Assembly (NCBI RefSeq): GCF_902652985.1
Contig: NC_047019.1
Coordinates: 36,146,001-36,210,000 of the forward strand
Direction of reading: 5' to 3'
DNA from: Pecten maximus
Taxonomy: Eukaryota
Length of the DNA: 64,000 bases
The notes beneath the pieces are model-generated. The model was not told where the DNA came from, did not search any database, and worked only from the letters and a program-made list of their open reading frames with translations. Positions 36,438 through 64,000 of this stretch are shown one piece after another (positions within the stretch are counted from its first letter, which is position 1; every line of letters starts with the position of its first letter). A program made the translations under genes and the position numbers.

Positions 36438-36900
36438 CTATCAGTCGGAATTACACCACCTATCGTGAATCTATCAGTCGGAATTACACCACCTATCGTG
36501 AATCCATCAGTCGGAATTACACCACCTATCGTGAATCCATCAGTCGGAATTACACCACCTATCGTGAATCTATCAGTCGGAATTACACCACCTATCGTGA
36601 ATCTATCAGTCGGAATTACACCACCTATCGTGAATCTATCAGTCGGAATTACACCACCTATCGTGAATCCATCAGTCGGAATTACACCACCTATCGTGAA
36701 TCCATCAGTCGGAATTACACCACCTATCGTGAATCCATCAGTCGGAATTACACCACCTATCGTGAATCCATCAGTCGGAATTACACCACCTATCGTGAAT
36801 CTATCAGTCGGAATTACACCACCTATCGTGAATCCATCAGTCGGAATTACACCACCTATCGTGAATCTATCAGTCGGAATTACACCACCTATCGTGAATC
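36438..36900. repeat. 33-bp minisatellite, 14 copies
   Basis: Unit TCAGTCGGAATTACACCACCTATCGTGAATC(T/C)A. Confidence 0.97.
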
Positions 36901-37555: not shown

Positions 37556-40500
37556 TTAGATTTAGTGCTTGTCTATATCAGAGTGTTATACAAGCCTAGT
37601 TCTTGTCTCTGTCAGAGTGTAATACAAGAATAGTGCTTGTCTAGGTCAGAGTGTAATACAACCCTAGTGCTTGTCTCCGTCAGAGTGTAATACAAGCCTA
37701 GTGCTTATCTAGGTCAGAGTGTAATACAAGCCTAGTGCTTGTCTAGGTCAGAGTGTAATACAACCCTAGTGCTTGTCTCTGTCAGAGTGTAATACAAGTC
37801 TAGTGCTTGTCTAGGTCAGAGTGTAATACAAGCCTAGTGCTTGTCTCCGTCAGAGTGTAATACAACCCTAGTGTTTGTCTAGGTCAGAGTGTAACACAAG
37901 TCTAGTGCTTGTCTAGGTCAGAGTGTAATACAAGCCTAGTGCTTGTCTCTGTCAGAGTGTAATGCAAGTCTAGTGCTTGTCTAGGTCAGAGTGTAATACA
38001 AGTCTAGTGCTTGTCTAGGTCAGAGTGTAATACAAGCATAGTGCTTGTCTCTGTCAGAGTATAATGCAAGTCTAGTGCTTGTCTAGGTCAGAGTGCAATA
38101 CAAGTCTAGTGCTTGTCTAGGTCAGAGTGTAATACAAGCCTAGTGCTTGTCTAGGTCAGAGTGCAATACAAGTCTAGTGCTTGTCTAGGTCAGAGTGTAA
38201 TACAAGCCTAATGCTTGTCTAGGTCAGAGTGTAATACAACCCTAGTGCTTGTCTCGGTCAGAGTGTAATACAAGTCTAGTGCTTGTCTCTGTCAGAGTAT
38301 AATGCAAGTCTTGTGCTTGTCTCTGTCAGAGTGTAATACAAGCCTAGTGCTTGTCTCTGTCAGAGTGTAATGCAAGTCTAGTGCTTGTCTAGGTCAGAGT
38401 GTAATACAAGTCTAGTGCTTGTCTAGGTCAGAGTGTAATACAAGCCTAGTGCTTGTCTAGGTCAGAGTGTAATACAAGCCTAGCTAATGCTTGTCTAGGT
38501 CAGAGTGTAATACAAGTCTAGTGCTTGTCTAGGTCAGAGTGTAATACAAGCCTAGTGCTTGTCTCTGTCAGAGTATAATGCAAGTCTAGTGCTTGTCTCG
38601 GTCAGAGTGTAATACAAGCCTAGTGCTTGTCTAGGTCAGAGTGTAATACAAGTCTAGTGCTTGTCTAGGTCAGAGTGTAATACAAGTCTAGTGCTTGTCT
38701 AGGTCAGAGTGTAATACAAGTCTAGTGCTTGTCTCCGTCAGAGTGTAATACAAGCCTAGTGCTTGTCTCCGTCAGAGTGTAATACAAGCCTAGTGCTTGT
38801 CTCCGTAAGAGTGTAATACAAGCCTAGTGCTTGTCTAGGTCAGAGTGTAATACAAGTCTAGTGCTTGTCTAGGTCAGAGTGTAATACAAGCCTAGTGCTT
38901 GTCTAGGTCAGAGTGTAATACAACCCTAGTGCTTGTCTCCGTCAGAGTGTAATACAAGCCTAGTGCTTGTCTAGGTCAGAGTGTAATACAAGCCTAGTGC
39001 TTGTCTAGGTCAGAGTGTAATGCAAGTCTAGTGCTTGTCTAGGTCAGAGTGTAATACAAGTCTAGTGCTTGTCTCCGTCAGAGTGTAATACAACCCTAGT
39101 GCTTGTCTCCGTCAGAGTGTAATATAAGCCTAGTGCTTGTCTAGATCAGAGTGTAATACAAGCCTAGCTAATGCTTGTCTAGGTCAGAGTGTAATGCAAG
39201 TCTAATGCTTGTCTCGGTCAGAGTGTAATACAAGCCTAGTGCTTGTCTAGGTCAGAGTGTAATACAAGTCTAGTGCTTGTCTAGGTCAGAGTGTAATACA
39301 AGTCTAGTGCTTGTCTCGGTCAGAGTGTAATACAAGTCTAGTGCTTATCTCCGTCAGAGTGTAATATAAGCCTAGTGCTTATCTCCGTCAGAGTCTAATA
39401 CAAGCCTAGTGCTTGTCTCTGTCAGAGTGTAATATAAGCCTACTGCTTATCTCCGTCAGAGTGTAATACAAGCCTACTGCTTATCTCCGTCAGAGTGTAA
39501 TACAAGCCTAGTGCTTGTCTAGGCCAGAGTGTAATACAAGTCTAATGCTTGTCTCGGTCAGAGTGTAATACAAGTCTAGTGCTTATCTCCGTCAGAGTGT
39601 AATACAAGCCTACTGCTTATCTCCGTCAGAGTGTAATACAAGCCTAGTGCTTGTCTAGGTCAGAGTGTAATACAACCCTACTGCTTATCTCCGTCAGAGT
39701 GTAATACAAGTCTACTGCTTATCTCCGTCAGAGTGTAATATAAGCCTAGTGCTTATCTCCGTCAGAGTCTAATACAAGCCTAGTGCTTGTCTCTGTCAGA
39801 GTGTAATATAAGCCTACTGCTTATCTCCGTCAGAGTGTAATATAAGCCTAGTGCTTATCTCCGTCAGAGTCTAATACAAGCCTAGTGCTTGTCTCTGTCA
39901 GAGTGTAATACAAGCCTAGTGCTTGTCTAGGCCAGAGTGTAATACAAGCCTAGTGCTTATCTCCGTCAGAGTGTAATATAAGCCTAGTGCTTATCTCCGT
40001 CAGAGTGTAATATAAGCCTACTGCTTATCTCCGTCAGAGTGTAATACAAGCCTAGTGCTTGTCTCCGTCAGAGTGTAATACAAGCCTACTGCTTATCTCC
40101 GTCAGAGTGTAATATAAGCCTACTGCTTATCTCCGTCAGAGTGTAATACAAGTCTAGTGCTTATCTCCGTCAGAGTGTAATATAAGCCTACTGCTTATCT
40201 CCGTCAGAGTGTAATACAAGCCTACTGCTTATCTCCTTCAGAGTGTAATATAAGCCTACTGCTTATCTCCGTCAGAGTGTAATACAAGCCTAGTGCTTAT
40301 CTCTGTCAGAGTGTAATACAAGCCTGCTGCTTATCTCCGTCAGAGTGTAATACAACCCTAGTGCTTGTCTAGGTCAGAGTGTAATACAAGTCTAGTGCTT
40401 ATCTCCGTCAGAGTGTAATACAAGCCTACTGCTTATCTCTGTCAGAGTGTAATACAACCCTAGTGCTTGTCTCCGTCAGAGTGTAATATAAGCCTAGTGC

Positions 40501-40667
40501 TTGTCTAGGTCAGAGTGTAATATAAGCCTACTGCTTATCTCCGTCAGAGTGTAATACAAGCCTACTGCTTATCTCCGTCAGAGTGTAATATAAGCCTACT
40601 GCTTATCTCCGTCAGAGTGTAATATAAGCCTAGTGCTTATCTCCGTCAGAGTGTAATATAAGCCTAA
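37556..40667. repeat. 34-bp tandem repeat, ~90 copies
   Basis: Unit GTCAGAGTGTAATACAAGCCTAGTGCTTGTCTAG and variants. Confidence 0.97.
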
Positions 40668-41032: not shown

Positions 41033-44000
41033 ATGGCATGTTCCAAAGACCAGTTATTGACAAGCCGGCTGGGTTTAGAAGAGGAACTGTCCTGTACCAT
41101 CTGTCTGGATTTGTACGATGATCCTGTATCCCTCCCATGTCAACACAATTTCTGTCGTAAATGTATACATGCACACTTACAGCAGAAGTCGGATGTTCTC
41201 GTGCATGTCCTTGGAGGTCAGCCTAGACGATTCCAGTGTCCAAATTGTCGGGAATCTACCGAGCTCACGGATGCAGGCATTAAAATTTTGCCAAAGAATT
41301 TCGCTTTACAGAACATCATTTCAAAACTTCAGGCAGTGAAATCAGAAAATGATGAGGAAGATGTAAGAGAAATTAACTGCTGCCATCACAACAAACCTCT
41401 GATGGTGTACTGCAATACATGTGAGGAGGCCATGTGTATTGATTGCATTCCAACACGGAGTCATGAAAACCACACCATTGTCCATTTTAATGACAAAATG
41501 AAGATGTACCAGGTATGACCTTCAGTAGACGATGTATTCCAATTAATTTATTGTTAAAAGGAGGTTTCATATTTGTTCATGCATAGACGACAGTGAAGAA
41601 ACCCAACTTGTACTTTTTCTGTTCTGTCTGAGAGTTTTCCTAGAAGAATTACATTTAAATATACAGTCCTTTTGTCTCTTTGTCCCGCTAATAAAATAAC
41701 TCTTCATGTACAACGTCTAGTCTTAGCAGTCACTAGGAAGCGACAACTTAAACAGTAACTTACACATTTGCAGGAAGAAGTGGAGCAGTCAATTTTGCCT
41801 AACGTTATCAAGTTGCAAGAATCTTTCAAAGGCATAAAGGAAGAGCTCGACAGTAGTCACGAAAAAAACAAGGTATGTTATCCTCTTTATGTAACAAGTT
41901 GTATCAATTGAAATAACCGGTTTATTTAATGCGGAAGTAGCATAGGGTATCGAATGTTGGTGATACATATAAGCTAGGCAACGAGTGTATTTTGCTTTCA
42001 ATGAAAACTTGAGTGACGTGACTCGCCTCATTAACTAATAATGAGTAAATCATAATATATTTAAGAATTTTTAACATTATCTTATCTCGTCAAAACAGTT
42101 TACTATTTTTCGAATTGACAGTGTCACAAATATTTTACTTAATTGCTTGCAGATCTTTACTGGAACGAAAAACATATCTATTTAGATAGAGTAAACTGCA
42201 TCTTCAAAGATTTTATGAGAATGTTTGTTATTTTCGAACAGAACAATTAAACGATGCATTCCAGAAAATACATACGCCAATTCACTAGGCTCGTCAGCGT
42301 GATTCCTACTCACTTTGTCTTTTCAGGAAATGCTTCAGGTCAATTGGAAAGGAGTTGCTGACAGTTTTCAGGAACTTAGATCAGCTGTGAACCAGAAAGA
42401 ATCAGAGTTGATGTTTTCATTTGAGTCGAAGAAACAGGAAATGGAATCCCATTATAAAAGTCAAACTGACAGAATGGTTGTCCAGTTGGACACTCTGGGA
42501 AACCTCATCACAAAATTTTCAACCATGACATTCAATGATCATGCAAAAATTACTGAGGTACGTTTTTTGTTGTTTCATTCTTACAGTAAGGAATAATATA
42601 TACTAAAATATACCTGATAGAGTCAAGTGATTGTGTGCATTCCTATATAGCCCGAGTTTCCTCTGGCCCTGACGCCATGTCTGGTGTAGACGAAACTCGG
42701 GCTAATTCCTATAGTGACTTAGTTATCTTTATCCTTATTTGAAATAATATCAACAAGGCTGATGCTCTCAAACTTGGTGAAAAAATAATACTTTTATTTC
42801 TACATTTGTCAATACGAATTGTAACCATAATTTTTTTTTTTTTAAATCCATAGCCATAACGGTTGTGGAATGTTTCTTTGATGAGTAATGATTTCAGGAA
42901 GACTTACGTAAGTTATTTTTCCTACGGTAGCTGATATTATGTACCTAATGTAACCGTAATAATATTACAAAACCCTTTGATTCCACAGAGACTTTGTTCC
43001 CAAAGTTCTCAGAAATATACAATACATTTACTTTGTATTTCTGAAGAAACAAAAATGAAAACGAATGTCATTTGGAGAAGCGATGGTGATGAGTCTCAAT
43101 TAGCAAACACGTTCCTTGGTAAAACTGATAACGTACAATAATTCTATTTCGTACTTATGTAATCAGCATCTTTTCTTTTAACAGGAAATGAAATTGGACA
43201 AAGAAAGGTAATTATAAAATAGCTGGATCGACCATGTCGGTTATAGGTGACAAAAAAACTAAAATCAAGATGAGAATTCAAGATTTAAATAGAATATCAT
43301 ATCGATAACTATTTAACTCTAATTTTAAAAAGGATTATAAAATACATTTTGTAATTGCAATATGATTATCTTCTCATGCTTCTTAGGAATCGGGGAAAGG
43401 TGTCAATTATTTCAAGCACATGTGAATATAAAAAATGTTGTTTTGCATGTTGCTGTGAAATGTTAACAGTAAAGACAAGCTATCTTCCTGGTGTGTGTGA
43501 AACAGTAGGAAAGGTTTGTAACGGCAACATAAATAGGACAGGTTTGTAACGGTAACATAGTTCCACCGTGTTGTTCCTGTTACAGATAGAACAGGTTTGT
43601 AACGGTAACATAGTTCTACTGTGTTGTTCCTGTTACAGATAGGAAAGGTTTGTAACGGTAACATAGTTCCACTGTGTTGTTCCAGTTACAGATACGACAG
43701 ATTTGTAACGGCAACATAGTTCCACTGTGTTGTTCCTGTTACAGATAGAACAGGTTTGTAACGGTAGCAAAGTTCCACTGTGTTGTTCCAGTTACAGATA
43801 CGACAGATTTGTAACGGCAACATAGTTCCACTGTGTTGTTCCTGTTACAGATAGGAAAGGTTTGTAACGGCAACATAAATAGGACAGGTTTGTAACGGTA
43901 ACATAGTTCCACTGTGTTGTTCCAGTTACAGATACGACAGATTTGTAACGGCAACATAATTTCACTGTGTTGTTCCTGTTACAGATAGGACAGGTTTGTA

Positions 44001-47000
44001 ACGGCAACATAGTTCTACTGTGTTGTTCCTGTTACAGATACGACAGGTTTGTAACGGCAACATAGTTCCACCGTGTTGTTCCTGTTACAGATAGGAAAGG
44101 TTTGTAACGATAACATAGTTCTACCGTGTTGTTCCTGATACAGATAGGAAAGGTTTGTAACGGTAACATAGTTCCACTGTGTTGTTCCTGTTACAGATAG
44201 GACAGATTTGTAACGGCAACATAGTTCCACTGTGTTGTTCCTGTTACAGATAGGACAGATTTGTAACGGCAACATAGTTCTACTGTGTTGTTCCTGTTAC
44301 AGATAGGAAAGGTTTGTAACGGTAACATAGTTCCACCGTGTTGTTCCTGTTACAGATAGGAAAGGTTTGTAACGGTAACATAGTTCCACCGTGTTGTTCC
44401 TGTTACAGATAGGAAAGGTTTGTAACGGCAACATACTTCTACCGTGTTGTTCCTGTTTCAGATAGGAAAGGTTTGTAACGGTAACATAGTTCCACCGTGT
44501 TGTTCCTGTTACAGATAGGAAAGGTTTGTAACAGTAACATAGTTCCACTGTGTTGTTCCTGTTAGATAGGAAAGGTTTGTAACGGCAACATAGTTCTACT
44601 GTGTTGTTCCTGTTACAGATAGGAAAGGTTTGTAACGGTAACATAGTTCTACTGTGTTGTTCCTGTTACAGATAGGACATATTTGTAACGGCAACATAGT
44701 TCCACTGTGTTGTTCCTGTTACAGATACGACATATTTGTAACGGCAACATAGTTCCACTGTGTTGTTCCTGTTACAGATACGACAGGTTTGTAACGGCAA
44801 CATAGTTCCACTGTGTTGTTCCTGTTACAGATACGACAGGTTTGTAACGGCAACATAGTTCCACTGTGTTGTTCCTGTTACAGATAGGACAGGTTTGTAA
44901 CGGCAACATAGTTCTACTGTGTTGTTCCAGTTACAGATACGACATATTTGTAACGGTAACATAGTTCTACTGTGTTGTTCCTGTTACAGATACAACAGGT
45001 TTGTAACGGCAACATAGTTCTACTGTGCTGTTCCAGTTACAGATACGACATATTTGTAACGGTAACATAGTTCTACTGTGTTGTTCCTGTTACAGATACA
45101 ACAGGTTTGTAACGGCAACATAGTTCCACTGTGTTGTTCCTGTTACAGATAGGACAGGTTTGTAACGGCAACATAGTTCTACTGTGTTGTTCCTGTTACA
45201 GATACGACAGATTTGTAACGGCAACATAGTTCTACTGTGTTGTTCCTGTTACAGATACGACAGGTTTGTAACGGTAACATAGTTCCACTGTGTTGTTCCT
45301 GTTACAGATAGGACAGGTTTGTAACGGCAACATAGTTCTACTGTGTTGTTCCAGTTACAGATACGACAGATTTGTAACGGTAACATAGTTCCACTGTGTT
45401 GTTCCTGTTACAGATACGACAGATTTGTAACGGCAACATAGTTCTACTGTGTTGTTGCTGTTACAGATACGACTGATTTGTAACGGTAACATAGTTCTAC
45501 TGTGTTGTTCCTGTTGCAGAATGGACATATTTGTAACGGTAACATAGTTCTACCGTGTTGTTCCTGTTACAGATACAACAGATTTGTAACGGTAACATAG
45601 TTCCACTGTGTTGTTCCTGTTACAGATACGACAGATTTGTAACGGCAACATAGTTCTACTGTGTTGTTGCTGTTACAGATACGACTGATTTGTAACGGTA
45701 ACATAGTTCTACTGTGTTGTTCCTGTTGCAGAATGGACAGATTTGTAACGGTAACATAGTTCTACCGTGTTGTTCCTGTTACAGATACGACATATTTGTA
45801 ACGGTAACATAGTTCCACTGTGTTGTTCCTGTTACAGATACGACAGATTTGTAACGGCAACATAGTTCCACTGTGTTGTTCCTGTTACAGATAGGACAGG
45901 TTTGTAACGGCAACATAGTTCTACTGTGTTGTTGCTGTTACAGATACGACTGATTTGTAACGGTAACATAGTTCTACTGTGTTGTTCCTGTTGCAGAATG
46001 GACAGATTTGTAACGGTAACATAGTTCTACCGTGTTGTTCCTGTTACAGATACAACAGATTTGTAACGGTAACATAGTTCCACTGTGTTGTTCCTGTTAC
46101 AGATACGACTGATTTGTAACGGTAACATAGTTCTACTGTGTTGTTCCTGTTACAGATACGACAGGTTTGTAACGGTAACATAGTTCCACTGTGTTGTTCC
46201 TGTTACAGATACGACAGATTTGTAACGGCAACAGTGTTCCACTGTGTTGTTCCTGTTACAGATAGGACAGGTTTGTAACGGCAACATAGTTCTACTGTGT
46301 TGTTCCTGTTACAGATACGACAGATTTGTAACGGCAACATAGTTCCACTGTGTTGTTCCTGTTACAGATACGACAGATTTGTAACGGCAACATAGTTCCA
46401 CTGTGTTGTTCCTGTTACAGATAGGACAGGTTTGTAACGGCAACATAGTTCTACTGTGTTGTTCCAGTTACAGATACGACATATTTGTAACGGTAACATA
46501 GTTCTACTGTGTTGTTCCTGTTACAGATACGACATATTTGTAACGGTAACATAGTTCTACTGTGTTGTTCCTGTTACAGATACAACAGGTTTGTAACGGC
46601 AACATAGTTCCACTGTGTTGTTCCTGTTACAGATAGGACAGGTTTGTAACGGCAACATAGTTCTACTGTGTTGTTCCTGTTACAGATACGACAGATTTGT
46701 AACGGCAACATAGTTCTACTGTGTTGTTCCTGTTACAGATACGACAGGTTTGTAACGGTAACATAGTTCCACTGTGTTGTTCCTGTTACAGATAGGACAG
46801 GTTTGTAACGGCAACATAGTTCTACTGTGTTGTTCCAGTTACAGATACGACAGATTTGTAACGGTAACATAGTTCCACTGTGTTGTTCCTGTTACAGATA
46901 CGACAGATTTGTAACGGCAACATAGTTCTACTGTGTTGTTGCTGTTACAGATACGACTGATTTGTAACGGTAACATAGTTCTACTGTGTTGTTCCTGTTG

Positions 47001-50000
47001 CAGAATGGACATATTTGTAACGGTAACATAGTTCTACCGTGTTGTTCCTGTTACAGATACAACAGATTTGTAACGGTAACATAGTTCCACTGTGTTGTTC
47101 CTGTTACAGATACGACAGATTTGTAACGGCAACATAGTTCTACTGTGTTGTTGCTGTTACAGATACGACTGATTTGTAACGGTAACATAGTTCTACTGTG
47201 TTGTTCCTGTTGCAGAATGGACAGATTTGTAACGGTAACATAGTTCTACCGTGTTGTTCCTGTTACAGATACGACATATTTGTAACGGTAACATAGTTCC
47301 ACTGTGTTGTTCCTGTTACAGATACGACAGATTTGTAACGGCAACATAGTTCCACTGTGTTGTTCCTGTTACAGATAGGACAGGTTTGTAACGGCAACAT
47401 AGTTCTACTGTGTTGTTCCTGATACAGATAGGACAGATTTGTAACGGCAACATAGTTCTACCGTGTTGTTCCTGTTACAGATAGGAAAGGTTTGTAACGG
47501 TAACATAGTTCCACTGTGTTGTTCCTGTTACAGATAGGACAGATTTGTAACGGCAACATAGTTCCACTGTGTTGTTCCTGTTACAGATAGGACAGATTTG
47601 TAACGGCAACATAGTTCCACTGTGTTGTTCCTGTTACAGATAGGACAGATTTGTAACGGCAACATAGTTCTACTGTGTTGTTCCTGTTACAGATAGGACA
47701 GGTTTGTAACGGTAACATAGTTCCACTGTGTTGTTCCTGTTAGATAGGACAGATTTGTAACGGCAACATAGTTCTACCGTGTTGTTCCTGTTACAGATAG
47801 GAAAGGTTTGTAACGGTAACATAGTTCTACCGTGTTGTTCCTGATACAGATAGGAAGGGTTTGTAACGGTAACATAGTTCTACCGTGTTGTTCCTGTTAC
47901 AGATAGAACAGGTTTGTAACGGTAACATAGTTCCACCGTGTTGTTCCTGTTACAGATAGGAAAGGTTTGTAACGGTAACATAGTTCTACTGTGTTGTTCC
48001 TGTTACAGATAGGAAAGGTTTGTAACAGTAACATAGTTCCACCGTGTTGTTCCTGTTACAGATAGGAAAGGTTTGTAACGGTAAAATAGTTCCACTGTAT
48101 TGTTCCTGTTACAGATAGGAAAGGTTTGTAACAGTAACATAGTTCCACTGTGTTGTTCCTGTTAGATAGGAAAGGTTTGTAACGGTAACATAGTTCCACC
48201 GTGTTGTTCCTGTTACAGATAGGAAAGGTTTGTAACGGTAACATAGTTCCACCGTGTTGTTCCTGTTACAGATAGGAAAGGTTTGTAACGGCAACATACT
48301 TCTACCGTGTTGTTCCTGTTTCAGATAGGAAAGGTTTGTAACGGTAACATAGTTCCACCGTGTTGTTCCTGTTACAGATAGGAAAGGTTTGTAACAGTAA
48401 CATAGTTCCACTGTGTTGTTCCTTTTGGATAGGAAAGGTTTGTAACGGCAACATAGTTCTACTGTGTTGTTCCTGTTACAGATAGGAAAGGTTTGTAACG
48501 GTAACATAGTTCTACTGTGTTGTTCCTGTTACAGATAGGACATATTTGTAACGGCAACATAGTTCCACTGTGTTGTTCCTGTTACAGACACGACAGGTTT
48601 GTAACGGCAACATAGTTCCACTGTGTTGTTCCTGTTACAGATAGGACAGGTTTGTAACGGCAACATAGTTCCACTGTGTTGTTCCTGTTACAGATAGGAC
48701 AGGTTTGTAACGGCAACATAGTTCTACTGTGTTGTTCCAGTTACAGATACGACATATTTGTAACGGTAACATAGTTCTACTGTGTTGTTCCTGTTACAGA
48801 TAGGACAGGTTTGTAACGGCAACATAGTTCCACTGTGTTGTTCCTGTTACAGATAGGACAGGTTTGTAACGGCAACATAGTTCTACTGTGTTGTTCCTGT
48901 TACAGATACGACAGATTTGTAACGGCAACATAGTTCCACTGTGTTGTTCCTGTTACAGATAGGACAGGTTTGTAACGGCAACATAGTTCTACTGTGTTGT
49001 TCCTGTTACAGATACGACAGATTTGTAACGGCAACATAGTTCCACTGTGTTGTTCCTGTTACAGATACGACAGATTTGTAACGGCAACATAGTTCTACTG
49101 TGTTGTTGCTGTTACAGATACGACTGATTTGTAACGGTAACATAGTTCTACTGTGTTGTTCCTGTTACAGATACGACAGGTTTGTAACGGTAACATAGTT
49201 CCACTGTGTTGTTCCTGTTACAGATAGGACAGGTTTGTAACGGCAACATAGTTCTGCTGTGTTGTTCCAGTTACAGATACGACAGATTTGTAACGGTAAC
49301 ATAGTTCCACTGTGTTGTTCCTGTTACAGATACGACAGATTTGTAACGGCAACATAGTTCTACTGTGTTGTTGCTGTTACAGATACGACTGATTTGTAAC
49401 GGTAACATAGTTCTACTGTGTTGTTCCTGTTGCAGAATGGACAGATTTGTAACGGTAACATAGTTCTACCGTGTTGTTCCTGTTACAGATACAACAGATT
49501 TGTAACGGTAACATAGTTCCACTGTGTTGTTCCTGTTACAGATACGACTGATTTGTAACGGTAACATAGTTCTACTGTGTTGTTCCTGTTACAGATACGA
49601 CAGGTTTGTAACGGTAACATAGTTCCACTGTGTTGTTCCTGTTACAGATAGGACAGGTTTGTAACGGCAACATAGTTCTACTGTGTTGTTCCAGTTACAG
49701 ATACGACAGATTTGTAACGGTAACATAGTTCCACTGTGTTGTTCCTGTTACAGATACGACAGATTTGTAACGGCAACATAGTTCTACTGTGTTGTTGCTG
49801 TTACAGATACGACAGATTTGTAACGGTAACATAGTTCTACTGTGTTGTTCCTGTTGCAGAATGGACAGATTTGTAACGGTAACATAGTTCTACCGTGTTG
49901 TTCCTGTTACAGATACAACAGATTTGTAACGGTAACATAGTTCCACTGTGTTGTTCCTGTTACAGATACGACAGATTTGTAACGGCAACATAGTTCTACT

Positions 50001-53000
50001 GTGTTGTTGCTGTTACAGATACGACTGATTTGTAACGGTAACATAGTTCTACTGTGTTGTTCCTGTTGCAGAATGGACAGATTTGTAACGGTAACATAGT
50101 TCTACCGTGTTGTTCCTGTTACAGATACGACATATTTGTAACGGTAACATAGTTCCACTGTGTTGTTCCTGTTACAGATACGACAGATTTGTAACGGCAA
50201 CATAGTTCCACTGTGTTGTTCCTGTTACAGATAGGACAGGTTTGTAACGGCAACATAGTTCTACTGTGTTGTTCCTGATACAGATAGGACAGATTTGTAA
50301 CGGCAACATAGTTCTACCGTGTTGTTCCTGATACAGATAGGAAAGGTTTGTAACGGTAACATAGTTCCACTGTGTTGTTCCTGTTACAGATAGGACAGAT
50401 TTGTAACGGCAACATAGTTCCACTGTGTTGTTCCTGTTACAGATAGGACAGATTTGTAACGGCAACATAGTTCCACTGTGTTGTTCCTGTTACAGATAGG
50501 ACAGATTTGTAACGGCAACATAGTTCTACTGTGTTGTTCCTGTTACAGATAGGACAGGTTTGTAACGGTAACATAGTTCCACTGTGTTGTTCCTGTTAGA
50601 TAGGACAGATTTGTAACGGCAACATAGTTCTACCGTGTTGTTCCTGTTACAGATAGGAAAGGTTTGTAACGGTAACATAGTTCTACCGTGTTGTTCCTGA
50701 TACAGATAGGAAGGGTTTGTAACGGTAACATAGTTCTACCGTGTTGTTCCTGTTACAGATAGAACAGGTTTGTAACGGTAACATAGTTCCACCGTGTTGT
50801 TCCTGTTACAGATAGGAAAGGTTTGTAACGGTAACATAGTTCTACTGTGTTGTTCCTGTTACAGATAGGAAAGGTTTGTAACAGTAACATAGTTCCACCG
50901 TGTTGTTCCTGTTACAGATAGGAAAGGTTTGTAACGGTAAAATAGTTCCACTGTATTGTTCCTGTTACAGATAGGAAAGGTTTGTAACAGTAACATAGTT
51001 CCACTGTGTTGTTCCTGTTAGATAGGAAAGGTTTGTAACGGTAACATAGTTCCACCGTGTTGTTCCTGTTACAGATAGGAAAGGTTTGTAACGGTAACAT
51101 AGTTCCACCGTGTTGTTCCTGTTACAGATAGGAAAGGTTTGTAACGGCAACATACTTCTACCGTGTTGTTCCTGTTTCAGATAGGAAAGGTTTGTAACGG
51201 TAACATAGTTCCACCGTGTTGTTCCTGTTACAGATAGGAAAGGTTTGTAACAGTAACATAGTTCCACTGTGTTGTTCCTTTTGGATAGGAAAGGTTTGTA
51301 ACGGCAACATAGTTCTACTGTGTTGTTCCTGTTACAGATAGGAAAGGTTTGTAACGGTAACATAGTTCTACTGTGTTGTTCCTGTTACAGATAGGACATA
51401 TTTGTAACGGCAACATAGTTCCACTGTGTTGTTCCTGTTACAGACACGACAGGTTTGTAACGGCAACATAGTTCCACTGTGTTGTTCCTGTTACAGATAG
51501 GACAGGTTTGTAACGGCAACATAGTTCCACTGTGTTGTTCCTGTTACAGATAGGACAGGTTTGTAACGGCAACATAGTTCTACTGTGTTGTTCCAGTTAC
51601 AGATACGACATATTTGTAACGGTAACATAGTTCTACTGTGTTGTTCCTGTTACAGATAGGACAGGTTTGTAACGGCAACATAGTTCCACTGTGTTGTTCC
51701 TGTTACAGATAGGACAGGTTTGTAACGGCAACATAGTTCTACTGTGTTGTTCCTGTTACAGATACGACAGATTTGTAACGGCAACATAGTTCCACTGTGT
51801 TGTTCCTGTTACAGATAGGACAGGTTTGTAACGGCAACATAGTTCTACTGTGTTGTTCCTGTTACAGATACGACAGATTTGTAACGGCAACATAGTTCCA
51901 CTGTGTTGTTCCTGTTACAGATACGACAGATTTGTAACGGCAACATAGTTCTACTGTGTTGTTGCTGTTACAGATACGACTGATTTGTAACGGTAACATA
52001 GTTCTACTGTGTTGTTCCTGTTACAGATACGACAGGTTTGTAACGGTAACATAGTTCCACTGTGTTGTTCCTGTTACAGATAGGACAGGTTTGTAACGGC
52101 AACATAGTTCTGCTGTGTTGTTCCAGTTACAGATACGACAGATTTGTAACGGTAACATAGTTCCACTGTGTTGTTCCTGTTACAGATACGACAGATTTGT
52201 AACGGCAACATAGTTCTACTGTGTTGTTGCTGTTACAGATACGACTGATTTGTAACGGTAACATAGTTCTACTGTGTTGTTCCTGTTGCAGAATGGACAG
52301 ATTTGTAACGGTAACATAGTTCTACCGTGTTGTTCCTGTTACAGATACAACAGATTTGTAACGGTAACATAGTTCCACTGTGTTGTTCCTGTTACAGATA
52401 CGACTGATTTGTAACGGTAACATAGTTCTACTGTGTTGTTCCTGTTACAGATACGACAGGTTTGTAACGGTAACATAGTTCCACTGTGTTGTTCCTGTTA
52501 CAGATAGGACAGGTTTGTAACGGCAACATAGTTCTACTGTGTTGTTCCAGTTACAGATACGACAGATTTGTAACGGTAACATAGTTCCACTGTGTTGTTC
52601 CTGTTACAGATACGACAGATTTGTAACGGCAACATAGTTCTACTGTGTTGTTGCTGTTACAGATACGACAGATTTGTAACGGTAACATAGTTCTACTGTG
52701 TTGTTCCTGTTGCAGAATGGACAGATTTGTAACGGTAACATAGTTCTACCGTGTTGTTCCTGTTACAGATACAACAGATTTGTAACGGTAACATAGTTCC
52801 ACTGTGTTGTTCCTGTTACAGATACGACAGATTTGTAACGGCAACATAGTTCTACTGTGTTGTTGCTGTTACAGATACGACTGATTTGTAACGGTAACAT
52901 AGTTCTACTGTGTTGTTCCTGTTGCAGAATGGACAGATTTGTAACGGTAACATAGTTCTACCGTGTTGTTCCTGTTACAGATACGACATATTTGTAACGG

Positions 53001-56000
53001 TAACATAGTTCCACTGTGTTGTTCCTGTTACAGATACGACAGATTTGTAACGGCAACATAGTTCCACTGTGTTGTTCCTGTTACAGATAGGACAGGTTTG
53101 TAACGGCAACATAGTTCTACTGTGTTGTTCCTGATACAGATAGGACAGATTTGTAACGGCAACATAGTTCTACCGTGTTGTTCCTGATACAGATAGGAAA
53201 GGTTTGTAACGGTAACATAGTTCCACTGTGTTGTTCCTGTTACAGATAGGACAGATTTGTAACGGCAACATAGTTCCACTGTGTTGTTCCTGTTACAGAT
53301 AGGACAGATTTGTAACGGCAACATAGTTCCACTGTGTTGTTCCTGTTACAGATAGGACAGATTTGTAACGGCAACATAGTTCTACTGTGTTGTTCCTGTT
53401 ACAGATAGGACAGGTTTGTAACGGTAACATAGTTCCACTGTGTTGTTCCTGTTAGATAGGACAGATTTGTAACGGCAACATAGTTCTACCGTGTTGTTCC
53501 TGTTACAGATAGGAAAGGTTTGTAACGGTAACATAGTTCTACCGTGTTGTTCCTGATACAGATAGGAAGGGTTTGTAACGGTAACATAGTTCTACCGTGT
53601 TGTTCCTGTTACAGATAGAACAGGTTTGTAACGGTAACATAGTTCCACCGTGTTGTTCCTGTTACAGATAGGAAAGGTTTGTAACGGTAACATAGTTCTA
53701 CTGTGTTGTTCCTGTTACAGATAGGAAAGGTTTGTAACGGTAACATAGTTCCACCGTGTTGTTCCTGTTAGATAGGAAAGGTTTGAAACGGTAACATAGT
53801 TCTACTGTGTTGTTCCTGTTACAAATAGGAAAGGTTTGTAACGGTAACATAGTTCTACTGTGTTGTTCCTGTTACAGATACGACAGGTTTGTAACGGTAA
53901 CATAGTTCTACTGTGTTGTTCCTGTTACAAATAGGAAAGGTTTGTAACGGTAACATAGTTCTACTGTGTTTTTCCTGTTAGATAGGAAAGGTTTGTAACG
54001 GTAACATAGTTCTACTGTGTTGTTCCTGTTACAAATAGGAAAGGTTTGTAACGGTAACATAGTTCCACTGTGTTGTTCCTGTTAGATAGGAAAGGTTTGT
54101 AACGGTAACATAGTTCTACTGTGTTGTTCCTGATACAGATAGGAAGGGTTTGTAACGGTAACATAGTTCTACTGTGTTGTTCCTGATACAGATAGGAAGG
54201 GTTTGTAACGGTAACATAGTTCCACTGTGTTGTTCCTGTTACAGATAGGACAGATTTGTAACGGCAACATAGTTCTACTGTGTTTTTCCTGTTAGATAGG
54301 AAAGGTTTGTAACGGTAACATAGTTCCACCGTGTTGTTCCTGTTACAGATAGGAAAGGTTTGTAACGGTAACATAGTTCCACTGTGTTGTTCCTGTTACA
54401 AATAGGACAGATTTGTAACGGCAACATAGTTCTACTGTGTTGTTCCTGTTACAAATAGGACAGATTTGTAACGGTAACATAGTTCCACTGTGTTGTTCCT
54501 GTTACAAATAGGACAGATTTGTAACGGCAACATAGTTCTACTGTGTTGTTCCTGTTACAGATACGACAGATTTGTAACGGTAACATAGTTCCACTGTGTT
54601 GTTCCTGTTACAAATAGGACAGATTTGTAACGGTAACATAGTTCCACTGTGTTGTTCCTGTTACAAATAGGACAGATTTGTAACGGCAACATAGTTCCAC
54701 TGTGTTGTTCCTGTTACAGATACGACAGGTTTGTAACGGTAACATAGTTCTACTGTGTTGTTCCTGTTACAGATAGGACAGGTTTGTAACGGTAACATAG
54801 TTCTACTGTGTTGTTCCTGTTACAGATAGGACAGATTTGTAACGGCAACATAGTTCCACTGTGTTGTTCCTGTTACAAATAGGACAGATTTGTAACGGCA
54901 ACATAGTTCTACTGTGTTGTTCCTGTTACAGATAGAACATGAACACTGTTTAGTGGACAACTGATTTGCTGGGCAATATGGATATGTGTTCAGGGTACCA
55001 TATAACCAGGTATATTGTGATATACTTTGCGTTTTAGCCCACCATCATCTTATGGTTGGCTATTCAATTTCCCCTGCTTCCATGGTCCTTCGATCTGTCC
55101 GTAAACAATAATTGTTATCGCTATTTCTTGAGATGTACCGGAGGAAACATCATCTGTAGGTTCTCTTTGGTCTCTAGTTGTGCTTGTTCAATTTTGAGCC
55201 TGATCGGGACAACAAAATGATCGATAGGCAGCTATCTTCGATTTTGACAGTTGAAGTTTGTTATTGCTGGGAGGACATTTCTAAAACTTGTCGGTTCACC
55301 TTGGACCTTAGTTGTGCCTGTTCTATTTTGAAACTGATCGGCGACAAGCGATTATCTTGGATTTTGACAGTTGAGGATTGTCCCTTGTAAAGTAACTTTC
55401 ACTGAAACGTCGTGTGTAGATTCTATTTTGAAACTGATCAGAGAAAGAAATGGTCGACAGACAGCAATTTGGATTTTAACAAATGAAGTTTTGTCGCCAT
55501 TTTCGAAGAAATACTGGAAGGATTTTTCTGAAACTTGATCTGTAGGTTCCCATTAGTCCTTAGTTGTCCCTGTTTATAGCAAGCCAATATAAGGTTTATT
55601 ACCAAAATGAAATATCTCTTAAAATTCATGAAATACATGTACCTTTAATTTTGAGATTTATGGAGGAAAATGGCTGATAGGCAGCTATCTTGAATATTGA
55701 GTTGAAGGTACTGGAAGGATTTGTATGAAACTTGATATGTAGGTTCCTGGCATGCAGTCTCGTGTTATGACAATATCAATTTTGAGACTGTTCGCAGAAA
55801 CAAAATAGCTGGCAGTCGATCTTATTGGAATTAAATGCTTTTGTCAATTTTCAGAAATTTCCTTTCGATTCCACTTGCTTTCAAATACTTAGGAGGAAAC
55901 GACGAAAATTAAGAAAAATTTAAAAAAAAAAAAAAAAAAAAAAGTCAATTGTGGGCGCTAAGATTCCTCTGGGACCTCTTGGTAATTATGCAGGTTTGTG

Positions 56001-59000
56001 TTACTATACAATGTCGTTAGCATTTATTTCTAGTGAACATAGTCGCGGATATTTTAATTCCAGTTGTGAAGAGGCGTCAAGAGAGGAATCCGTGTCAAAA
56101 GAAAACATGACAAAGTTCCTTGGTGACGTAAACGAGTTAGTGGGTTCCAAACAGCTATTAGAAATGACTGAGGAGCTGAACAAGATTAAATTTCAAATCG
56201 ACAACATGAAGATTGGTAGGTTGTATAGCAAACCAATATAAGGTTTAATTATTACCAAACTGAAATATCTCTTAACATTCATGAAATACATGTACCTTTA
56301 AATGTTTCCATATATAGACAATATTGATACTTCATCTAATTCAAATAAATTATTACATCGCCATATTTTTAGAAATATAACTCTTTCACTACACTTGGTG
56401 TAATCTACCATATTAAGGTGTTGTGTGCGGTATCTCCATATAAAACAGCGATGTGATATCTTCATATAAGATGTGGTCCGATGTCTCCATATTTAGGTTT
56501 GGCCCGCGAGCTCCATATTTAGGTGTGCCGAGCTCCATATTTAGGTGTGGTGGGATATCTCCATGTACAGGTGTGTTCCGATATTTCCATATGTAGGTGT
56601 GGCCCGATATTTCCATATGTAGGTGTTGTGCGATATCTCCATATTCAGGTATGGTACGATGTCTCCATATTTATGTGTGGTGCAATGTGTCCGTATTGAG
56701 GTATTGTACGATATTTCCACATACAGGTTTGGTCCGATGTCTCTCATATTTAGATGTTATACGATATATTCATATTAAGTTGTGTAGCGATGTCGCCTTA
56801 TTGAAATCTGATACGATATCTCCTTATACAGGTGTGGTGCGATATTCCAAAATTCAGGTGTGGTGTGATGTCTCGATATCTAGGTGTGGTGTGATATTTC
56901 CATATAAAGGTGTGGTGCCTTATCTCAATATTTCGGTTTGGACAGGTATGACAATATTTGTGGTTGGAGCGATATTTCCATATTTAGATGAAGTGTGATG
57001 TTTCTATATCCAGGTATGTAGCGATGTCCTCATATTGAGGTTTGATACGATATATCCATATTAAGGCGTGTAGCGATGTCTCCTTATTTAGGCGAGGTGC
57101 AATATCGCCATATCAAGATGTGGTGCGATATATTTATATTTAGGTGATGTCCGCCATCTCCATATTTAGGTGTGGTCCGGAATCTCTATATTAGATGTGG
57201 TGCGCTGCCTCCATACAAAGACGTGATACGTTTCTCCGTATTAAGGTCCTGTCCGATATCTCCATATTTAGGCGTGATGCGATGTCTACAATTTTCGGTG
57301 TAACGATAACTTCTTTTTTCGATGTGGTACAATATCTCTCACTATCTGGTGCAATATTTCTATATACAGGTGTGGTCAAATGTCTTCATATTTAGGTGTG
57401 GTATGATATCTCCATATTTAGGTGTGGATCGTTATCTCCATAAACATGTGTGGTACAATAGCTCCATATTATCTTTGGTGCGATATCTCCATATTTAGGT
57501 GTTGTGCGACAACGCCATATTTCGGTTGTAGCGATGTATCTATATCTAGGTGTGGTACGATATCTACATATTTAGATATGTTGCAATGTCTCCATATTTA
57601 GATATGTTGCGAAGTCTCCATATTTAGGTTTGGTACGTTACCTCTATATACAGGTGTGGCGAGATAAATCCATATTTATGTGAGTTCCGATAGCCTTATT
57701 AGTCAAATCAGGTTAGATATCTCTCTATTATGACCTTGTACGATGTCTCAATGGTTAGGCAAAGTACGGTATCTCCATATTTAGGTAAAGAGCGATGCCC
57801 ATAGTTAGACAGAATTCAAAGGTCAAGTCAGATACTTCCCATTTAGAATATTGATTTATTCTTGAATACGTGTGCAATGTTTATTGAAAATAATCCGTTG
57901 GCTAAACCCCAGCTATTTTATCTGTAAAATTTTCAGAATCCACACAAGACGTTAGACTTCAACGGGGAGATCAAACAGCACTATGTCAATCAACATCATC
58001 ATATAGTACTGCCCCAGAACATCCCTGAAGACTCTTGGCAACCGGTATTTTAGAAACTTGTTGGTATACATCGTAGCTTTAATAGTTCTAATATACTCAG
58101 CTATGTAGTTGTACATAAAATATCACCTTTTGCCTCTAAAAGAAATGAACTGGAAAAATTCTTAGGCGCCCGTTTTACAAATGTGTTGGGCAAATTGAAT
58201 ACTCACCTTGCCTTTCCGTTTCAAGGTTTGTCGTTTAAATGTATGAACTGTAAAATGAACTACCTATATCCTTATCCGTTACCCGAAGGTCAATCTAGTA
58301 ATTATGCATTAATGCGGCGTCCGTCGTCCGCTCGACGTCAACTTTTAATCACGCTTGTTGGCCCGGATTGAAGCAGGCGATGGGTCTCACAGCGAGATGA
58401 AACCCCTGGATACCCAGGGTCATAGTGGTATAAAATTATCCTGATCATAGGTTGTCATTGATGCTATGGCGGCCATTTTATAACACCATCGCGCAATCAT
58501 CGTATTATGTAAAGAATACACATTTTAAGCTTTTTCTGTAGTTCTATCAGTCAGATATGGATGAACCCTAAGTACTTACTGCTATAACTGTTATCAAGCT
58601 TAGCCAAACCATGTCAGGCCCATCTTGTTCTCATATAAGGGTAATAATATTGTGCCAGTAGCATGCTTTGATAAAGGGCTAACAAATTTATTCAAATGAA
58701 TCGCCAACTTTCAATGTCACGGGGATCAAAATGTGTGAAATTTTATGGCAATTTTCTCATTAATAACCAGGAGTTCCAGGGTTACGATACCTGGCCAGTA
58801 TCATGCTAGAAACTTACTTTCATATTGGAATGAAGTTTTTCTACTTAGCATCCATATCAATTGTAAAAGTTTTATGAGTAGCAGGTGAGCGAAACAGGCC
58901 CATTTGATCTCTTGCTCGACCGTGCACGAAATTACAGAGCTAACGCAAAATTCATTACAAAATACCTTCCAACTATCTGCACTATGCAAACTGTTGATTC

Positions 59001-60373
59001 TTATGTTAAGAAAACGTCAGATATGTAGTCTTCTAAATAAGTTCAGAAAACATCAGATATACATGTATAGTCTTTATATTGACAAAGACAAATTTGATCT
59101 ATTGACACGATAATTTACACATACATTCGTTTGTATATAACATTATCTGTAGTAGAGCGGCCTCGACACAATAGGCATAATTTCTCGTCAGTATAAACAC
59201 TGTATTGCTTTGTCTCTTCGTCATAATCTGTTGTCTAATCTGGATTTATCTCAACTCAATTTGTTTTGTTTATTGTACTATATTGATCTTGTCCGAAGAT
59301 CCTCTTTCTGTTTTACATAATCTTTTGAGACTTGGTAAACTTTATTATCATCATAATTATTGAGCTGTGCTTTCTCAAACGCTATTTTGATCACAGATAT
59401 TTTATTCATGTTCGATATCAGAGTTTTTGACTGATCTTTTTGAAACTCGATAGGCTTTATCTGTTTAAAAATAATTTTAGGTATCTATGATTTCCTGCGC
59501 TGTCATTAATTGGCTTAAAATCACTTTGCGTTTTAGCGATAATCATGTTCGCAGAGGTCCTTGTTTTTTTCATACGATCTCAATAGGTAGGATATGCAAG
59601 CATCCTATGACACGTAGGTGTGCTTACCCAGACAGCATTAATTAACTGTTTCACTTCACGGTAATCTTGCTCTATTTAATGTGCACCAATTTAAAAGAAA
59701 AAGCCACGATTTGTACAAAACGCCTTACACCTAGACCATGAATTTCAGAATAAAGGAAGACGAATCAGTCAAAGGGTGAAAATTGTGGACCCCAGCACCG
59801 GGAAAGATATATCGAGCGAAATCCAAAACGGAAGATACACTGGACGAAGTTCTTCTGTAGAGCTGTCTCGGAGCCATTGGTATGACAGTTACGAGTTCCC
59901 CAATGACGACACATCCAACAAACCATTGAACAAGGTTTGATTTGTATTTGTTATTTTTGTTGATTCCTTTATCAATTCTGACTTGTATTTCTATTTTCAC
60001 TTGGGTGACTGAGGATACAAATTTAATTACAGGTACACCTATTATGACATTGTGGGAATTTCTATTCAATAAATATGGAAACTCTACTTAAAACAGTATT
60101 AGTTTGTAGACGTCATTTAGCCAATGTGAGCAAAAAGAGCACAGACTTTTTTCAATCGAAAGTAAATTTATACAAATTACATACATGCTAAATGTTTTTT
60201 AATGGCATAACTTTGCAAAAATAATACAGATAAACTGTTTAAATCAGTACGACTGTTTTCAGGAAAATCAACGATCAGGAGGAAAAGTGAAGTTTTCGCA
60301 ATTAAAAAGGAAGCAAAAGAAAAAGAACAGAAAAGAAGGCAACGGCTTGTTCACCGACGAGGATTACGATTAA
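41033..60373 (+). CDS. TRIM/RBCC E3 ubiquitin ligase (RING-HC, B-box 2, coiled coil, atypical tail). Exons 41033-41512, 41774-41872, 42327-42557, 43185-43207, 56064-56215, [57937-58044, has TGA], 59735-59934, 60263-60373
   Basis: RING [43 protein letters not shown] linker and B-box CCHHNKPLMVYCNTCEEAMCIDC..H.NH. The 99/231/23-nt exon series resembles the classic TRIM 96/231/23 pattern. The first five exons are well supported; the last three rest on phase-compatible splice sites, a TAA at 60371 and AATAAA at 60420. Confidence 0.8.
42648..42704. mobile_element. Short MITE-like element, internally deleted
   Basis: TIR TAGCCCGAGTTTC / GAAACTCGGGCTA. Confidence 0.65.
43503..54937. repeat. 53-bp satellite, ~215 copies (11.4 kb) in TRIM intron 4, with higher-order duplication
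   Basis: Unit GTAACGGCAACATAGTTCCACTGTGTTGTTCCTGTTACAGATAGGACAGATTT; rare variants recur at a 2856-bp offset. Confidence 0.98.
55032..55982. mobile_element. Degraded Helentron/HINE-like element (family B) with internal repeats
   Basis: TTTTAGCCCACCATCATCTTATGGTTGGCTA start and AAGATTCCTCTGGGACCTCTTG end; homologous to 7917-8425. Confidence 0.65.
56400..57790. repeat. Degenerate 26-bp tandem repeat
   Basis: Consensus about TCTCCATATTTAGGTGTGGTCCGATG. Confidence 0.85.
58270..58914. mobile_element. Degraded Helentron/HINE-like element
   Basis: GGCGTCCGTCGTCCG microsatellite near the start and CAGGTGAGCGAAACAGGCCC...CTCTTG end. Confidence 0.5.
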
Positions 60374-60531
60374 CTATATAGTTTTGTCGTTATTTCCTCC
60401 TATAAATAATACAAAACGGAATAAATATTGTAATAGGTTTTTAACCTTCTCCGCCAATTCCAAGATATTTTTTCTATTGTATATGTGCCTGCTCGGTTCT
60501 CGGTATAGTATCTATGATTTAACGTTTTCCA

Positions 60532-60890
60532 TTTGATTCCCCTTTACATATAACATTTTAATCCCCTTTAACAGATTACATTTTACAACCCTTAAAACAT
60601 ATCATTTGATTCCCCTTTACATATAACATTTGAATCCCCTTTAACGGATAACATTTTTATCCCATTTAATAGATAACATTTGAATCCCCTTTAACGGATA
60701 ACATATTAAACCTCTTTTACAGTTAACCAGAGGCGTATATATCATACAAGTCTCCGAGTTAACATTTGAATCCCCTTTACGGATAACATTTAAATCCGTT
60801 TTTAACGGATAATATCCTAACCTCCTTTAACAGAAAACATTTTAATCCTCTTTTACAGATACCATTCAAATCCCCTTAATAGATTACGCT
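60532..60890. repeat. Degenerate 25-bp tandem repeat
   Basis: Unit about ACATTTGAATCCCCTTTAACGGATA at 60626, 60651, 60676, 60701 and onward. Confidence 0.8.
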
Positions 60891-62881: not shown

Positions 62882-64000
62882 TACCCACTTATACTCAAGA
62901 GAATTCAGACATAAATACCCAATAGATTCAACACACTAATACTCGAGAGAATCTTCACACCTATACTCAGGAGAATCGACATACCAATACTCACAATAAT
63001 TCACAAACCAATACCCAAGATAATCCACACGACAATACTCGAGATAATTCACACAATATTCGAGATATTTCACACACGAATACTAAGAGACTTTATACAC
63101 CAAATCCTCAAGAGAATTCACACACCAACACTCAAAATAATTCACACACAAATACTCAATAAAATCCACATACCATAACTCAAAAGAATTCATACACCAA
63201 TACTCCAGAAAATTTGCATACCAATACTCAAGAGAATCCACACACCAATACTCAATAAAATCCACATTCCAATACTCAATAGAATCCACATACCAATACA
63301 CAAGAAAATTCACAAACCAATACTAAAGAGAATTCACATACCATAACTCAAAAGAATTCATACACCAATACTCCAGAAAATTTGCATACCAATACTCAAG
63401 AGAATCCACACACCAATACTCAAGAGAATCCACATACCAATACTCAAGAGAATCCACATACCAATACTCAAGAGAATCCACACACCAATACTCAAGAGAA
63501 TCCACATACCAATACTCAAGAGAATTCACATACCAATACTCAAAATAATTCACACACCTATATTCAAGAAAATTTACAAACCAATACTCAAGAGAATCAA
63601 CCTACCAATACTCAAGAGAATTCACAAACCAATACTAAAGAGAATTCACACACCAATGCTCGGGAGAATCCACAAACCAATACTCAAGACAATTCACACC
63701 AATACTCAAGACAATTCACACACCAATGCTCAAGAGAATCGACAAACCAATACTCAAGACAATTCACACGCCAATGCTCAAGAGAATTCACAAACCAATA
63801 CTCAAGAGAATCGACAAACCAATACTCAAGAGAATTCACACACCAATACTCAAGAGAATTGACAAATCAATACTAAAGAGAATTCACACACCAATACTCA
63901 AGAGAATCGACAAACCAATACTCAAGAGAATTCACACACCAATACTCAAGAGAATCGACAAATCAATACTCAAGAGAATTCACAAACCAATACTGAAGAG
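62882..64000. repeat. 24-bp tandem repeat running off the right edge
   Basis: Unit CCAATACTCAAGAGAATCCACATA; a variant block recurs at a 168-bp offset (63170/63338). Confidence 0.95.

Follow-up and report, generated by a model that had tools for sequence, protein, structure and literature searches.

The stretch of DNA analyzed here (the window) is 64,000 nucleotides in length and covers positions 36,146,001 to 36,210,000 of Pecten maximus contig NC_047019.1 (G000:C5:36146001-36210000), within an assembly of 918 Mb. It contains, on the + strand, a gene for a predicted RING, B-box, coiled-coil (RBCC) E3 ubiquitin ligase whose tail includes a look-alike of the peptide with which the translation initiation factor eIF4G binds poly(A)-binding protein (PABP). 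Reading the window sequence together with RNA contigs gives eight coding exons and a predicted product of approximately 462 codons. Each exon was searched separately; the overall length and the residue numbering were calculated from the exon lengths. The features, in window coordinates, are as follows.

41033 to 41512, + strand: exon 1, 160 codons, with the start codon, RING finger, and B-box; phase 0 donor CAG|GT.
41774 to 41872, + strand: exon 1b, 33 codons, helical or coiled-coil-like, phase 0; AG|..|GT borders and an open frame.
42327 to 42557, + strand: exon 2, 77 codons, putative coiled-coil region; borders from the sequence.
43185 to 43207, + strand: exon 2b, a 23-nucleotide microexon, found in the loose end of a contig of run X2.
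56064 to 56215, + strand: exon 3, end of the helical region, ending in phase 1 (run X1 record 1, run X2 record 8).
57937 to 58044, + strand: exon 3b, a Ser/Thr/Gln-rich linker, 108 nucleotides in the assembly and 107 in the RNA contigs.
59749 to 59934, + strand: exon 4, 62 tail codons with the eIF4G-like motif; acceptor ...tttcag|AAT, donor 59934|GT.
59776 to 59823, + strand: the motif VKIVDPSTGKDISSEI, 16 codons, the look-alike of the eIF4G PABP-binding peptide.
60263 to 60373, + strand: exon 5, 36 codons and the stop codon at 60371-60373.
60374 to 60652, + strand: 3' untranslated region, to the extent that RNA contigs track the window.

Splicing was assessed with sequencing runs of one organism. 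A total of 24 runs were listed, 20 of which contain part of the stretch, and four were aligned to positions 55900-60700: X1 and X2 (both from study P1), X3 (study P2), and X5 (study P4). All are Logan contigs, which give neither abundance nor strand. Only X5 is recorded as RNA and the RNA label of X1, X2, and X3 is a guess; the spliced joints that the contigs carry show their RNA origin.

Exon 3 is joined to exon 3b by a GT..AG joint (56215|57937) in two of the four runs (X1 and X2, one contig each). The order exon 2, microexon, exon 3 is seen in one run, where an X2 contig has 151 further letters before position 56062. Thirty of these letters are the end of exon 2 (9 letters) followed by the microexon, and this 30-mer has no contiguous match in the window with up to two mismatches allowed. 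Exon 3b is joined to exon 4 in one run as well; 29 letters from the end of exon 3b stand directly before position 59748 in an X2 contig, which places the acceptor at 59748|59749. The joint between exons 4 and 5 is present in all four runs, with the last 15 (X1 and X2) or 21 (X3 and X5) letters of exon 4 preceding position 60261. The joint between exons 1 and 1b was placed from frame and splice sites, not from RNA.

An earlier reading made from the sequence alone (the sequence-only reading) had proposed that the tail exons belong to the RBCC transcript, and the contigs bear this out by chaining exon 2, the microexon, and exons 3, 3b, 4, and 5. The possibility that the tail exons are separate from the RBCC gene was rejected because RNA contigs join them. 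That reading had offered two routes into the tail, of which the one through 57937-58044 is found in X1 and X2, while the direct joint from 56215 to 59735 was seen in none of the four runs. Its junction from 59934 to 60263 occurs in all of them. The tail exon had been given as 59735-59934; the donor at 59934 stands and the start does not, the true start being 59749. The residues HEFQ are intronic because exon 4 begins at 59749. Both peptide strings quoted from the tail are present, KGRRISQRVKIVDPSTGKDISSEIQNGR in a frame starting at 59752 and SQLKRKQKKKNRKEGNGL within 60263-60373, which closes with the stop at 60371-60373.

In runs X3 and X5 (contigs on 59837-59934 and 60261-60652), exon 5 is preceded by a third version of the exon 4 end, with 21 letters that are unlike both the window and the paralog described below. 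Exon 5 of X3 shows 12 differences over 108 letters and skips 56 bases at 60368-60425. This third version comes either from a divergent allele or from a third copy missing from the assembly.

Downstream of the stop codon, contig records 7, 15, 19, and 23 end at positions 60559-60652 in the 3' untranslated region. A 25/73-bp tandem repeat (60530-60727) past those contig ends makes the 3' ends ambiguous, and within this array the contigs of all four runs branch to other sequence.

The domains of the predicted protein were sought with Pfam in seven exon peptides at E≤1. Exon 1 contains a RING finger at residues 21-72 (PF00097, 43.4 bits with a cut-off of 21; PF13445, 43.5 bits with a cut-off of 25.2) and a B-box at residues 113-150 (PF00643, 32.7 bits with a cut-off of 24.1). 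Exon 2 has a weak, below cut-off match to the coiled-coil family PF24850 (E 0.023), and exons 1b to 3 appear helical and charged by eye. The seven peptides gave no match to PRY/SPRY, NHL, or filamin domains, as the sequence-only reading had stated, and none to PAM2 (PF07145) or the plectin domain. Neither a MIF4G domain nor an eIF4E-binding site was found in them, and the MIF4G matches of the genome lie on C16, C10, and C7, with none on C5. Three other identities for the gene or its tail were ruled out on these searches: membership of the eIF4G family of MIF4G scaffolds (no MIF4G match), a PAM2-type PABP partner (no PF07145 match at E≤1), and a plectin repeat (no PF00681 match in exon 4 at E≤1). 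The gene is thus predicted to encode a TRIM-like E3 ligase composed of RING, B-box, and coiled coil, with a low-complexity tail in place of a globular C-terminal domain. Exon 5 closes this tail with a Lys/Arg-rich patch (60305-60334) followed by an acidic/aromatic C-terminus. The patch could equally be a nuclear localization signal or an RNA contact.

The RBCC family of the genome is large, with 39 RING/B-box matches listed at E≤1e-5 among 150 candidates scored. A third RING/B-box exon lies on the same contig at G000:C5:36218432-36218848 (- strand), approximately 8 kb past the window end, and is 52% identical to exon 1. No tail with the motif turned up for this third exon in the genome search with the motif exon.

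A six-frame search of the whole genome (918 Mb) with the exon 4 peptide returned three matches from four scored candidates. These are exon 4 itself, a paralog at C5:35922468-35922659 (- strand, 69% identity), and C16:21792091-21792204 (E 0.0025, 54% identity over 37 residues). The exon on C16 is rich in Gln and includes a motif of its own, IKIVDPNTGKDISSEI. An exon with the eIF4E-binding sequence YDRDFLL lies approximately 3.7 kb downstream of it on the same strand, and the best MIF4G matches of the genome (56.9 bits) lie 6-8 kb downstream. Because the motif exon precedes both YDRDFLL and the best MIF4G matches on the same strand, the C16 gene is identified by its sequence as the animal's own eIF4G.

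The window motif is identical to the animal's own eIF4G motif at 14 of 16 positions, and the paralog motif at 15 of 16. Local alignment to the eIF4G exon scores 86 for the window copy (shuffled maximum 58) and 92 for the paralog (shuffled maximum 69), and none of 20,000 shuffles reaches the observed score, so that the motif stands above shuffled controls. Both ligase copies share the departures of the animal's own eIF4G from the human peptide, namely a single Gly, Val for Arg before Asp, and Ser-Ser for Thr-Glu.

The PDB was searched with each sequence against 177,635 distinct sequences at E≤10. The motif region of the animal's own eIF4G has a single match, the human eIF4G peptide 1lj2_C (E 0.025). 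The window tail also has a single match, 4f02_C, annotated as Eukaryotic translation initiation factor 4 gamma 1 (E 0.78, 13.8 bits), with 11 identities over 22 aligned positions and one gap. The paralog tail has two matches only, 4f02_C (E 0.039) and 1lj2_C (E 0.09). Entry 4f02 also contains RRM1-2 of PABP1. The likeness to the eIF4G PABP-binding peptide, first noticed by eye in the sequence-only reading, is therefore recovered both from the animal's own eIF4G (14 of 16 positions) and from the sole PDB match. A second proposed likeness, between the basic KRKQKKKNRK of exon 5 and a basic segment of eIF4G, was not recovered, as a genome search with the exon 5 peptide at E≤10 gave no match other than exon 5 itself. 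This second likeness is one of composition only.

The only distant database match of the tail exon is P0001, a protein of 290 amino acids built of six tandem RQKVVDPETGExxSK units that scores as Plectin repeat PF00681 and as DUF4585. An xVDPxTG core is common to P0001 and the eIF4G motif. The motif could accordingly be real and selected, with a partner that is neither PABP nor a pathogen protein, such as another reader of the eIF4G segment, or it could form a plectin-repeat-like turn (IVDPxTG). In keeping with this, the one database protein reached at E≤0.001 consists of VVDPETGE units and scores PF00681, and the core does occur elsewhere. We consider such a partner quite unlikely, since exon 4 has no PF00681 match at E≤1, the PDB searches at E≤10 give eIF4G peptides and no plectin or desmoplakin chain, and the identity to the animal's own eIF4G runs on through GKDISSEI, past the VDPxTG core.

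The paralog locus (L010, G000:C5:35919000-35928500) lies on the - strand approximately 260 kb away, in the opposite orientation and with the same exon order. Identity at the DNA level is 97% for exon 1, 83.5% over 97 nucleotides for exon 1b, 94.8% for exon 2, 22 of 23 letters for the microexon, 80.6% for exon 3, and 85% over 167 nucleotides for exon 4. At the position of exon 3b the paralog has an unalignable but open 125-nucleotide candidate that keeps the phase and resembles exon 3b in its splice-site contexts. The exon 5 counterpart is weak (52% over 21 amino acids, E 0.012 within the 9.5-kb locus) and has a Lys-rich patch and an acidic/aromatic end. From its sequence, the paralog looks intact.

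The two copies were compared by Nei-Gojobori counts, with Fisher's exact test applied to rounded counts; all counts are small. Across the 16 motif codons there are 4 synonymous differences and 1 non-synonymous difference (synonymous rate dS 0.54, non-synonymous rate dN 0.027). The 46 flanking codons of exon 4 have 5.3 synonymous and 25.7 non-synonymous differences, a substitution pattern that differs from that of the motif (Fisher p=0.009). On the C-terminal flank of the tail, non-synonymous differences (Nd) number 16.7 and synonymous differences (Sd) 2.3. The comparison supports the motif as an island of purifying selection between the paralogs. Exon 1 has Nd 12 and Sd 1, and its dS is 0.01, compared with 0.29-0.42 in exons 1b and 4; so low a value points to gene conversion, and with it a mosaic history, or to positive selection.

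A chance likeness of a short peptide, with no common function, would be consistent with a match of only 16 residues and with the modest PDB E-values (0.78 and 0.039). It was rejected as highly improbable. The genome-wide six-frame search singles out eIF4G (E 0.0025) and found no unrelated proteins carrying the 16-mer, the shuffles do not reach the score, and the motif is conserved between the paralogs where the flanks are not. The resemblance of the tail motif to the eIF4G peptide is accordingly judged to be real and selected. Of the interpretation offered in the sequence-only reading, the mimicry of eIF4G is thus supported, and the suggested role in translation control or antiviral defense is a putative one.

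The DNA similarity between the ligase and eIF4G exons is confined to the motif (39 of 44 nucleotides for the paralog, a 20-nucleotide seed for the window copy), and no similarity of flanking DNA was found between them to show capture at the DNA level. Relative to the eIF4G motif, the ligase motifs have 10.5 (window) and 6.5 (paralog) synonymous differences over approximately 10.2 sites, which is saturation, and dN is 0.04-0.07. The motif does not appear to be a recent copy from eIF4G because synonymous sites are saturated while dN is this low. Its origin would be either an old capture held by selection or convergence, and the saturation makes capture and convergent mimicry indistinguishable.

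The presumed target was also sought in the genome. Two strong MLLE matches lie on C18 (31061378-31061557 and 31076000-31076179), 15 kb apart on the same strand, and are possibly tandem PABPC genes. Upstream of the first lie RRM exons near-identical to human PABPC1 RRM1-2 (E 2e-43 with 1cvj_A and 4f02_A); no RRM exons were present in the stretch that precedes the second (L019). The animal's PABPC RRM1-2 keeps the NGMLLN stretch with the equivalent of human Met161. In PMC10546976, PABPC1 is described as binding eIF4G through RRM2, and M161A as disrupting the interaction. The comparison thus shows a predicted PABP surface that is conserved in this animal.

The interpretation preferred here, at about an even probability, is that the RBCC ligase docks on PABP RRM2 through its eIF4G-type motif and competes with eIF4G, ubiquitinates PABP or neighboring proteins of the messenger ribonucleoprotein (mRNP), or both. 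The coiled coil would dimerize the ligase, and the tail motif would dock on RRM2 of poly(A)-bound cytoplasmic PABP, the site usually taken by eIF4G. Docking would bring the RING and its E2 to PABP-coated mRNPs, where the ligase could compete with eIF4G for PABP, ubiquitinate PABP or its neighbors, or do both. The outcome in either case would be reduced closed-loop translation or a marked mRNP. PABP binding, competition with eIF4G, ubiquitination, and their effect are all inferred from the gene and its motif. If PABP is bound, the ligase would be a new kind of translational repressor or mRNP-marking enzyme, and a core translation-factor motif would be redeployable on an unrelated scaffold.

Several observations weigh against this interpretation. 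The splicing of exon 1 to exon 2 is not directly seen in the RNA contigs, for which the runs were aligned to 55900-60700. The PDB E-value of the window copy is weak by itself (0.78). A 66-residue query that included the four intronic residues gave only four AlfC chains (E ~4.4) and no eIF4G; shorter, motif-centered queries recovered the eIF4G peptides. No ortholog or similar protein was found: the exon 4 peptide, searched against 1,835,955,588 representatives, gave one unrelated plectin-repeat match at E≤0.001, a blank of little power, as a single 16-residue motif could not reach that threshold. Word-based protein searches with exon 4 and with the N-terminal exon of eIF4G, which covered proteins of 0.55-1.75 times the query length only, were also blank, and the ESM Atlas gave no usable match.

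Of the basic cluster that precedes the motif, the window copy retains only a part, and the paralog has lost most. The nine residues ahead of the core include K, R, R, and R in the window copy. In the paralog the basic residues are K, R, and K, separated by acidic or neutral ones, and the animal's own eIF4G has K-R-E-K. PMC13081929 gives the region of human eIF4G1 necessary for PABP binding as the basic cluster and the first half of the core. The Lys-rich patch of exon 5, as a nuclear localization signal, could also remove the protein from cytoplasmic PABP.

The intron at 58045-59748, between exon 3b and exon 4, is covered by contigs at a depth of 14-20 (X1 and X2), compared with a depth near 0 in the rest of the introns. 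The runs therefore contain transcripts that retain this intron and lack the tail, or some DNA, and tail-less isoforms may be common. Within the same intron, a 160-bp bin (58315-58475) reaches a depth of approximately 455-486. This spike suggests an expressed repeat, alongside intron retention.

The last point of this kind concerns the assembled exon 3b, which has ...CCCT... at 58023-58026 and so, when read in the frame that continues from exon 3, a TGA stop at 58026-58028. The contigs differ from the assembly here. One letter is omitted at 58023 in X1 (38.9 of a depth of 38.9), X2 (45.4 of 138.3), and X3 (7.2 of 7.2), and one is omitted at 58026 in X2 (33.3 of 96.5). The remaining X2 depth of 59.6 at 58023 is the depth of record 8, which ends at approximately 58024 by its 89-letter side. 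Two more contigs begin at 58024, and their 9 clipped letters agree with the shorter form. Among the contigs listed (45 further records aside), every one that crosses 58023-58026 is one base short, and these come from runs of two studies. By hand translation, the 107-nucleotide exon 3b leaves the frame open from exon 3 into the motif frame of exon 4. The RNA contigs come in two forms, one with C and one with T at a spot where the assembly contains both, and the extra base is probably a consensus artifact at a heterozygous site.

If the TGA were real, the window copy would be a null allele, the tail would not be made, and the resemblance would be a relic. The covered intron fits such an allele too, as reading into it stops within a few codons. 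This alternative is very unlikely. The listed contigs of two studies lack the base, the C-or-T pattern at the extra base resembles a consensus artifact, and a relic would sit poorly with purifying selection on the motif and with an intact paralog.

The motif may also serve as a bait. In this alternative, the RBCC ligase belongs to innate immunity and presents a copy of the eIF4G peptide as an integrated decoy; pathogen proteins that seize that site on eIF4G, whether to stop host translation or to exploit it, would be trapped and ubiquitinated. The paralog tail and the animal's own eIF4G both match the human eIF4G peptide in 1lj2, which we take to be its complex with rotavirus NSP3. NSP3 binds eIF4G1 and evicts PABP according to PMC5524322, which makes the eIF4G peptide a known viral target. 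A decoy must track its host target, and the identity of 14-15 of 16 residues despite saturated synonymous sites fits this. Outside the motif, moreover, the paralogs diverge faster than neutral (C-flank Nd 16.7 and Sd 2.3; exon 1 Nd 12 and Sd 1), and the gene is a tandem-region duplicate within a large RBCC family. Fast divergence and tandem duplication in a large family are typical of immune genes. Plain PABP docking, however, accounts for the same data just as well, the dN/dS values come from small counts, and no pathogen of this animal was seen here to bind the eIF4G peptide; a decoy is rather unlikely on this balance. Were it correct, the ligase would do in an animal what decoy domains do in plant immune receptors, here directed at the translation apparatus, and bait would be a new logic of animal antiviral sensing.

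Tandem repeats surround the gene and fill parts of its introns. A 53-bp satellite (43879-54939, approximately 209 copies, 92% matches, 11 kb) makes up nearly all of the 12.9-kb intron that separates the microexon from exon 3. This satellite region, which also includes 43533-43877, yields dozens of spurious open reading frames on both strands. A 26-bp array of approximately 50 copies (56403-57682) lies in the intron between exons 3 and 3b. Upstream of the gene, arrays of 34 bp (91 copies) and 33 bp (14 copies) occupy 37563-40666 and 36440-36900, and a 24/48-bp array is found at the window end (62891-64000).

The closest known counterpart of the tail motif is the PABP-binding peptide of eIF4G, with which it shares the core [IV]K/R-I-x-D-P-x-x-G-K-D-I-[ST]-x-E-I and a low-complexity setting. 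The motif lies near the C-terminus in the ligase and near the N-terminus in eIF4G, and the ligase scaffold is RING/B-box/coiled-coil. TRIM/RBCC proteins without a C-terminal domain have the same order of RING, B-box, and helical region, and the gene belongs to a large, lineage-expanded set. In this ligase the substrate would be selected by a linear motif taken from a translation factor, in place of a PRY-SPRY, NHL, or filamin domain. Rotavirus NSP3, presumably the partner in 1lj2, stands on the other side of the same contact: NSP3 binds the eIF4G peptide, and the ligase carries it.

To our knowledge, neither Paip2 nor Musashi1 uses a copy of the eIF4G peptide. The proposed outcome, PABP occupied against eIF4G, would be the same for these proteins and the ligase, although Paip2 and Musashi1 are not ligases. 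Both are reported to compete with eIF4G for PABP (PMC9019252 and PMC2386104). Among titles and the opening lines of abstracts, no paper describing a ligase with an eIF4G-type peptide was found.

For known E3 ligases, the route to PABP is a PAM2 motif, which binds the MLLE domain. The Makorins offer an analogy, as a RING E3 brought to PABP by a short linear motif. In three reports (10.1101/516005, PMC7001992, and PMC8053111), MKRN1 carries PAM2 and MKRN3 is reported to ubiquitinate PABPC1/3/4. The Makorins differ in having PAM2, which binds the C-terminal MLLE domain, and C3H zinc fingers, where the ligase has an eIF4G-type motif on an RBCC scaffold. The eIF4G-type motif in 4f02 was crystallized with PABPC1 RRM1-2. 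If the docking proposed here is correct, this ligase would target the surface through which the mRNA loop is closed, unlike the PAM2/MLLE route of known E3 ligases, and ubiquitination would be directly coupled to competition with eIF4G.

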